DNA of 64,000 bases from Podarcis bocagei. Its lineage: Eukaryota. The position numbers were made by a program, and so were the translations under genes. Positions within the stretch are counted from its first letter, which is position 1. The number at the start of each line of letters is the position of its first letter. The DNA is taken from NCBI GenBank assembly GCA_964188305.1, contig OZ076903.1, one strand, 5' to 3'. Positions 37,450 to 38,760 of this stretch are shown piece after piece. The notes under the pieces were generated by a model. It was not told the origin of the DNA. It made no database searches and saw only the letters and a program-made list of their open reading frames with translations.

Positions 37450-38760
37450 GGGGCTAGCACTTGCCCCGCCCACCCGACCGTCCTCCCCCCTCTTCCTGTT
37501 TTCTGTTCTCTGGCGCAGGCGCGATGCGGCCCTTTAAACGTGCGCAAGGAGTTCCAGCAACCACATTCCCCTGCTGGTTGAATCCTTCCGCCTTGGCCCT
37601 GAGGGACTTTTTCTTCTGCTTTCTTTTGCTTCTGGAGCTCCCGACGTAACTCAACGCACTTAGCTGAGCCGTTTGGATGGGGGTTCCTGCATGAGATAGG
37701 TCGTTTTAGAGGCGCGCGGCGACATTTGGGGGAGGCTCCTTTCGTACCTGAGGAGAGTGGCGGAGGGAGACGCTTTGTTGTTGATGGCACAGCCTCAGCG
37801 GAGGGTATTGAGAAAGTCCAAGATGGCGGCGGCTGCCAGGCCGAGGGGACCCGGCAGGCCTTGAGTCCGGGAAGGGAGGGCTGTGAGAGCGGCACCGGGC
37901 CCGGAGAGGCACCAGGGAGACCCCGGAGAGGAGGCGGGAGCAAGGCTAAGGGGAGCGGCGACCCCGGGGAACCGCTGCGGCCGAGCGGCCTAGTTAACCC
38001 TCTTCAGTCAGGCCTGCGGCTCAAGTGAGGGGGAGGGGCCGGGTATGGCCCCCTGAGGGGCCCCGGGAGGGAGGGGCGGGCGGGGGGCATGGAGTCCCGG
38101 GAGGAGCTGGGGGAGCAGACCGAGGCGGGAGACCAAGGCCCGGGAGACTGGGCGCCTCGCGAGGAGAAAGGGGAGCGAGGGGTGCGGGGTCCGAGGGCGG
38201 AGAGAGGCCCTTCAGGCGAGAGTTGGGAGCACGGGGATTGTGGGGAGCGTGGTCCCAGGTCAGAGAAGGCCGAGCGGGCTGCCAAGGGGGAGCGAGGGGC
38301 TCCCAGGGGCGACAAGGCTGAGCAAGGGGATGGGGGTCCCCGGGGAGATCGAGCTCTTCGGGCTCCCAGAGGGGCGGACCAGGCGGACCGGGGGCTGTGG
38401 GGGGCAGAGCAAGGCGAGTGGGTGGAGCGTGGCCCGGCCTGGGCAGGGGAAGCCGAACCCCCGTTGCCCCCGGAGGATTTCTTGCCGCCGCCCGAGTGTC
38501 CCGTCTTTGAGCCCAGCTGGGCTGAATTCAGCGACCCACTAGGTTACATTGCGAAAATCCGGCCCATCGCAGAGAAGAGCGGCATCTGCAAGATCCGCCC
38601 TCCTGCCGTAAGTATGGAATACTGTGGGCAAGGGGGCACGAGTTGGGGGGCGCCTGTGGATTTCGGAGTAGCCCGTGCCTGCCAGTGGGCATGCGGAATT
38701 TGGAGCAGCAGGTTCTTGGTGTGCGACAGGCAGGTGCTTCGAGCAGGTGAGGGCCGTTGG
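37450..38760 (+). promoter_or_regulatory. KDM5C: KDM5C CpG-island promoter with YY1-type motif
   Basis: CpG island spanning exon 1; CAAGATGGCGGC at 37819-37830; G-runs just before the ATG. Confidence 0.75.
38089..38607 (+). CDS. KDM5C: KDM5C exon 1 (N-terminal extension + JmjN)
   Basis: ggcATGg start; [17 protein letters not shown]...KIRPPA|gtaagt. Confidence 0.88.

Follow-up and report, generated by a model that had tools for sequence, protein, structure and literature searches.

Nearly all studies of KDM5C use the mammalian protein, which starts at the JmjN domain. In the lizard Podarcis bocagei we analysed a stretch of 64,000 nucleotides (nt) from contig OZ076903.1 (assembly GCA_964188305.1), here called the window, in which the KDM5C reading frame of exon 1 opens about 130 codons ahead of JmjN with a Gly-, Glu- and Arg-rich segment. 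Is this N-terminal segment, the tail, part of the protein, or is it leader sequence that happens to lack stops, and does it belong to one lizard only? Comparison with related loci makes it highly probable that the tail is translated and conserved among sauropsids.

Coding signature of the KDM5C tail

The plus-strand open reading frame (ORF) runs from the ATG at 38089 (context GGGGGCATGG) to a GTAAGT donor at 38609 with no stop between, and this ATG is the sole in-frame one between an in-frame stop at 38026-38028 and JmjN. An initial annotation, made from the letters alone, had likewise read a single start and an open frame of ~130 codons, and the ORF bears this out. Its tail of ~123 residues at 38089-38457 keeps its start; the end was approximate, as the Phe of FLPPPEC begins at 38479 and the tail thus comprises 130 codons (38089-38478). 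The features of this region are as follows.

38089-38091, plus strand: KDM5C start codon, ATGGAG (Met-Glu); the sole in-frame ATG, the same in six sauropsid loci
38089-38478, plus strand: tail of 130 codons, rich in Gly/Glu/Arg/Ala/Pro and predicted to be disordered; ratio of non-synonymous to synonymous substitution (dN/dS) 0.19 against a viper, in-frame insertions or deletions (indels), low predicted local distance difference test (pLDDT) score
38479-38608, plus strand: JmjN-coding end of exon 1; Pfam JmjN E=2.8e-17; against the viper dN=0, dS=0.95
38609-38614, plus strand: exon 1 splice donor GTAAGT, read in the sequence; RNA depth stops here and is zero in the intron
41708-41785, plus strand: exon 2 (DWQPPF..RLNELE, 26 codons), from frame translation

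The openness of the frame was dropped as coding evidence, since a given frame is stop-free in 19% of dinucleotide shuffles (411 nt; P=0.19), and the other two frames here are also stop-free for >100 codons. That the tail goes beyond chance follows from comparative evidence, not from the single sequence.

We aligned the window with L001, which comes from genomic sequencing of the viper Macrovipera lebetinus (PMC12377087). Across the tail (390 nt) the only indels were of 30 nt and 3 nt, while ~390 nt of 5′ untranslated region (5′UTR) and promoter held five of 1 nt, one of 2 nt, one of 6 nt and one of 3 nt; at the 5′UTR rate, zero frame-breaking indels in the tail would have a probability of 0.0026. 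The p-distances of the 5′UTR and tail segments are alike (0.23 and 0.24). Differences between window and viper fall on codon positions 1/2/3 as follows.

5′UTR, first half: 12/12/13
5′UTR, second half: 12/17/12
Whole tail: 22/19/50 (chi-square p=6.5e-5)
Tail, first third: 7/11/16
Tail, second third: 8/5/19
Tail, last third: 7/3/15
JmjN: 0/0/16

The Nei-Gojobori dN/dS against the viper was 0.19 in the proposed frame, versus 1.28 and 1.55 in the other two, and a Fisher test of synonymous versus non-synonymous change gave p=1e-11. A second pair of loci, L002 and L005, classed as bird-type because their N-terminus is common to the Calidris model described below, yielded a dN/dS of 0.198 at an unsaturated dS of 0.22, with 8/5/27 differences over the codon positions and one 3-nt indel. 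Frame preservation and dN/dS across relatives, which the initial annotation had proposed as a check, thus both point to coding: dN/dS is 0.19-0.20, with in-frame indels only, in the window/viper and L002/L005 comparisons. Since dN/dS is ~0.2, changes favour third positions and indels stay in frame in both pairs, these alignments identify the tail as protein-coding and subject to purifying selection in two distinct lineages. In organism A, a close relative or sister species of the window's lizard, the fixed differences at 38457, 38481 and 38517 all lie at third codon positions. A contig of another related lizard, organism C (37580-38140), agrees with the window in the ATG and the 17 leading codons and shows no differences over 38076-38140.

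By its translated exons the gene is a KDM5C ortholog in the KDM5 (JARID1) family of H3K4 demethylases, because its JmjN exon shares 96% identity with named primate KDM5C fragments, compared with 77% for KDM5B and 74% for KDM5A, and because of its downstream domain order. Pfam places JmjN at residues 138-171 of the exon 1 ORF, the last 43 codons of which form the JmjN start; ARID, PHD, JmjC, the KDM5 C-terminal helical domain, PLU-1 and a second PHD follow in order on the plus strand in exon ORFs at 42632-54805. Exon 2 aligns with L001 4358-4468 at 88%, and the gene models of turtle and bird splice ..KIRPPA to DWQPPF, matching the exon 1 donor. The exon 1 region is a CpG island (GC 0.70-0.75, CpG observed/expected about 0.7). 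The 3′ end of IQSEC2, which directly precedes KDM5C in turtle locus L003 and in L004 (IQSEC2 is its neighbour in mammals too), had no tblastx match in window positions 1-37400; the KDM5C-IQSEC2 synteny may be different in this squamate, or the gap may exceed 38 kb, and the orthology call is not lowered by this. Intron 1 contains a high-copy interspersed repeat (39050-39100 and 39340-39740), with a pile-up of many unrelated contigs and reads at 39050-39096 (depth up to about 360) and, beside the repeat, a long ATT/ATA-type microsatellite at ~39190-39260.

Distribution and origin of the tail

Tailed orthologs were collected by a word search with the exon 1 peptide and by exhaustive phmmer, and lie on contigs L001-L005. 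The viper protein P0001 is 74% identical and starts Met-Glu-Ser-Arg-Glu-Glu, its first six residues being as in the window. P0023 and P0107 have tails of 160 and 161 amino acids, P0015 one of 60; P0002 is a partial spliced model from the turtle Lepidochelys kempii, beside IQSEC2, and in P0128 (UniRef100_A0A8C3PSX7), a spliced model of 1064 residues belonging to the bird Calidris pygmaea, the tail reaches about 190 residues. Tail lengths across loci are 60, 130, 138, about 160 and about 190 residues. A Met-Glu start and a related tail end recur in the viper, L002/L005, P0128, turtle L003 and L004, so the tail, called lineage-specific in the initial annotation, is not confined to a lizard lineage. 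Short N-termini are found in rodent-like (MELGSDDF), frog (METEDF) and fish (MEGEEF) proteins, where F(L/V)PPPEC follows within 5-8 residues; the rodent-like form, 8 residues to JmjN, agrees with the annotation's statement that human KDM5C begins essentially at JmjN. As judged from these orthologs, the tail occurs across sauropsids (in lizard, snake, birds and the turtle) and is lacking in mammals, frog and fish, which makes it an old reptile-and-bird insertion and not a peculiarity of one lizard. A tail of this kind is already public in the bird model (UniProt A0A8C3PSX7) and the partial turtle model, and no paper in the literature searched mentions a KDM5C N-terminal tail.

Mammalian KDM5C (JARID1C/SMCX) resembles the lizard gene in domain order, in its JmjN exon, in its Met-Glu start and apparently in its leader landmarks, but the stretch from Met-Glu to ..DDFLPPPEC measures 8 residues there and 130 in the lizard. 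In the leader alignments, GC-rich DNA that can hardly be aligned is interrupted by two invariant islands, which carry the following landmarks.

37818-37829, plus strand: YY1-like box CCAAGATGGCGG, in promoter or 5′UTR; invariant in six sauropsid loci and the rodent-like locus L007
37823-37864, plus strand: possible upstream ORF (uORF) 1, 13 codons and a stop (ATG 37823, stop 37862), opening inside the YY1-like box
38045-38056 (island to 38060), plus strand: mini-uORF ATGGCCCCCTGA (Met-Ala-Pro-stop), then GGGG; 44 nt before the main ATG

The likeness of the first island to YY1 follows the YY1 consensus, and we presume it only as a candidate assignment. The box precedes the main ATG by 269-329 nt in the sauropsid loci and by 307 nt in L007. 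The ATG of uORF 1 stands in a strong context; the counterparts of this uORF have 13-15 codons elsewhere among the sauropsid loci and 13 in L007; RNA depth starts only at about 37850-37862, 3′ of this ATG (37823), so uORF 1 is a candidate. The second island, ATGGCCCCCTGAGGGG, is 16 nt long and invariant in the window, L001, L002, L003, L004 and L005, with flanks that barely align. Its mini-uORF begins at L001 1292, L002 1421, L003 3693, L004 2931 and L005 1136, and precedes the main ATGGAG by 44-70 nt in the six sauropsid loci. At the aligned position (998), L007 has a Met-Arg-Pro-stop uORF, 59 nt before a Met-Glu-Leu-Gly-Ser-Asp-Asp-Phe start. The mini-uORF is a candidate amniote-wide translational control element.

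ATGGAG itself is kept in all six sauropsid loci. Because the spacing to both leader landmarks is kept and Met-Glu is common to both groups, the sauropsid start is likely to be the ancestral one, with the additional residues an in-frame insertion behind codon 2. What had been called an upstream extension is better described in this way, the start itself seeming ancestral. A model in which the start had shifted upstream was replaced, L007 having matching spacing of the YY1-like box and the mini-uORF to the main ATG.

TRF (Tandem Repeats Finder) detected no tandem repeats inside the window tail. Its direct repeats form 2-3-copy families of 76-94% identity at spacings of 48, 63, 117 and 180 nt, all multiples of three, and the degenerate repeats of 10-15 residues proposed in the initial annotation persist only in this weak form. 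In the turtle (L003 3751-4200) the tail forms a young tandem array (periods 21/39/48/88 nt, L003 3810-4146) encoding Asp-Arg-Ala-Pro-Pro-Ala-Glu-like units. The turtle array, the spread of lengths and the multiple-of-three spacings all fit growth of GC-rich CpG-island sequence through slippage or duplication, which is probably how the tail arose and is still changing.

The stretch between start and F(L/V)PPPEC is likewise variable in the paralogs KDM5A and KDM5B. Mammal-type KDM5B fragments (P0111, P0194 and P0198) carry a Pro/Gly-rich leader of about 25-30 residues, while the turtle and peafowl proteins (P0098 and P0103) begin Met-Ala-Glu-Phe. These KDM5A/KDM5B leaders are far shorter than the KDM5C tail and unrelated to it in sequence, and the long form of KDM5C is on the sauropsid side. 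KDM5B therefore shows the reverse of the KDM5C pattern, the sauropsid protein starting directly at Met-Ala-Glu-Phe and the mammal-type one having a leader. An apparent short KDM5C start in a contig of organism C (..ACCATGGCCGAG, TTCTTG..) was rejected as KDM5B exon 1, turtle and peafowl KDM5B having the same Met-Ala-Glu-Phe beginning. KDM5B exon 1 of organisms A and C also cross-maps to the JmjN part at 38479-38521, producing an apparent 4/11 polymorphism at 38499.

Predicted disorder and competing explanations

The tail is composed of G 0.19, E 0.17, R 0.13, A 0.12 and P 0.10, with hydrophobic residues at 0.09; its net charge is -9, Glu/Asp being as many as Arg/Lys. Two RGD motifs, ten RG dipeptides and the triplet run are present, as the initial annotation had listed. 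AlphaFold2, run on a nine-sequence alignment, gave pLDDT 47-51 for residues 1-110 without secondary structure (about 48 over residues 1-120), with helices in JmjN only. The tail is accordingly modelled as an intrinsically disordered, low-complexity region, predicted to be unfolded with biased composition and few hydrophobics, in line with the mixed-charge disordered segment that had been proposed ahead of JmjN.

The resemblance to collagen appears to be one of composition. Like the Pfam Collagen repeat (PF01391, which includes charged bacterial collagen-like proteins), the tail has Glu/Arg/Lys-rich Gly-X-Y runs and gives a weak hit, but at 15.4 bits it scores under the 27.2-bit cut-off, its longest run is 3 triplets, and nothing about this nuclear protein points to trimerisation or secretion. 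The longest runs in the orthologs are 10 triplets (viper), 2 (bird-type), 3 (turtle) and 6 (L004), and the Gly-X-Y register is not kept among the window and these four; nor does the viper ortholog have any RGD motif. The viper protein does have a precomputed Collagen hit, and phmmer matches long Gly-X-Y proteins at 40-45% identity; these matches are compositional. The residue pattern is thus not that of a collagen triple helix, a doubt that the initial annotation had already voiced.

Could the tail be translated and yet have no function of its own, as a tolerated low-complexity expansion that need only be in frame, soluble and harmless to JmjN? Its length and sequence differ strongly among squamates, birds and turtle, the turtle array is young, no fold is predicted, neither the Gly-X-Y register nor RGD is conserved, and mammals, frog and fish manage without a tail. 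Such an expansion would, however, be expected to evolve at a dN/dS of ~1, and each of the two independent pairs gives 0.2, in one case at unsaturated dS. The last ~25 residues of the tail, like the first ones, are moreover recognisable from lizard to bird and turtle: in all sauropsid loci the tail closes with two Trp, acidic residues and then Pro-Pro-Glu-Asp-Phe (..GEW..W..AEPPEDF). A tail is also present in every sauropsid locus seen. We regard this explanation as unlikely, although it survives better than the two that follow.

Transcription was followed in X23, a stranded RNA sequencing run from organism A. Plus-strand depth is 7-9 at 37862-38009 and 7-10 at 38380-38601, and zero in intron 1; no splice joints were found in exon 1. 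Because of the depth at 37862-38009, transcription in the sister species begins 230 nt or more ahead of the ATG. Reads may be removed by filtering, and a dip in depth alone is not a finding. For the check proposed in the initial annotation, a transcription start upstream of 38089, the sister-species reads 5′ of the ATG are favourable and the gap in depth at 38010-38380 is not. This gap may reflect filtering, dropout in reverse transcription or polymerase chain reaction, divergence, or a rare intron.

The last of these possibilities would make about 38025-38369 (GT..AG, 345 nt) an intron in some transcripts, the tail isoform-specific and the remaining leader devoid of the 38089 ATG. X23 depth falls near 38010-38025 and recovers near 38380, a GTGAGG stands at 38025, a pyrimidine-rich ..CCCAG ends at 38369, and a contig from organism B stops at 38019. 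Against this, no joints appear despite a flanking depth of 7-10, a few reads lie inside the gap, and the organism C contig is continuous through 38025 to 38140. Splicing would leave the mRNA without any in-frame AUG ahead of JmjN, and three G-quadruplex-type motifs (38057-38087, 38170-38197 and 38276-38309), together with possible read filtering, make a dip expected anyway. We consider such an intron very unlikely.

The weakest alternative is a 5′UTR open by chance in a CpG island, with the protein starting elsewhere (at a near-cognate in-frame CTG 38395, GTG 38422 or TTG 38464, or in an unseen upstream coding exon spliced before JmjN): the non-significant openness, a composition like that of the upstream non-coding G-rich DNA and the very low RNA depth over 38010-38380 would suit it, but it is highly improbable given a third-position bias and a dN/dS of 0.2 found in this frame only and 3′ of the ATG only, indels that are all multiples of three in the viper and bird-type pairs, an ATGGAG kept in six loci, the lack of any X23 splice joint within exon 1, and the assignment of the supposed short Met-Ala-Glu-Phe start to KDM5B.

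Several observations count against a translated tail inserted after an ancestral start. In the first third of the tail the codon-position bias is no more than a trend (p=0.17). X23 depth is about 0-1.5 over 38010-38380, with few reads inside, and the RNA was sequenced in a sister species, not in the lizard that supplied the window. Start-codon orthology with mammals depends on one rodent-like locus in a noisy GC-rich alignment, and the leader of the mammal-type transcript L008 is unrelated, AT-rich and without the mini-uORF. In the Lepidochelys assembly, finally, the ATG frame and the JmjN frame are off by one base. A C8 run at L003 3980-3987 (C7 in sister units; GCA_965140285.1) causes this shift; it may be genuine or an assembly error, and may explain why the public turtle model is partial.

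Possible role and wider meaning

Taken as a whole, a translated, disordered, sauropsid-wide tail inserted after the ancestral Met-Glu start is the explanation that we think probable. Exon 1 would be translated from the ATG at 38089 into a 130-residue mixed-charge disordered head lying directly before JmjN, the local form of a feature found across sauropsids. The start would be the Met-Glu of the vertebrate ancestor, and the insertion, placed between Met-Glu and ..(E/D)DFLPPPEC, would have arisen, and would go on changing, by slippage or duplication of CpG-island DNA.

A dN/dS near 0.2 instead of near 1 suggests that the peptide itself matters. It would not be a structural element but a flexible mixed-charge arm beside the JmjN/JmjC core, offering a regulatory or interaction surface for modification, for contact with partners or nucleic acid, or for control of stability. 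Candidate elements are the RG cluster (arginine methylation or nucleic-acid contact), the acidic runs and the Trp motif just before JmjN. The initial annotation had suggested arginine methylation, RNA binding or condensate formation as possible roles. RG/RGG sequences are known as arginine-methylation and nucleic-acid-binding motifs, and a tri-RG motif is defined by three or more RG within short spacers. The RG cluster is common to the squamates, and the tri-RG pattern, as a pattern only, is satisfied by RG-x-RG-xxxx-RG in the window and RG-S-RG-S-RG-E-RG in the viper. In its close-set RG dipeptides, disorder and Gly richness the tail resembles RG/RGG-box disordered nuclear proteins, but the window tail has no RGG triplet and is net negative. 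A specific interaction or regulatory role is therefore put forward tentatively, as a possibility to which we would give somewhat less than even odds. A long shot is a more detailed version, in which the Trp-Gly/Gly-Trp motifs and the RG cluster recruit a methyl-arginine reader or W-pocket protein or bind nucleic acid, and both uORFs throttle KDM5C dosage amniote-wide. If such a docking module were real, reptile and bird KDM5C would have a mode of targeting or regulation that the mammalian enzyme lacks.

In mammals the chromatin eraser KDM5C is sensitive to dosage; its gene escapes X inactivation and is one of those behind X-linked intellectual disability. A selected head of 60-190 residues in all sampled sauropsid lineages would set the enzyme of reptiles and birds apart from the mammalian one, and sauropsid KDM5C may differ from the latter in regulation, targeting or turnover. 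For annotators, the long N-terminus of sauropsid KDM5C models would be real and not an artefact. The locus would also provide a clean example of a coding low-complexity insertion derived from CpG-island sequence right behind a start codon.

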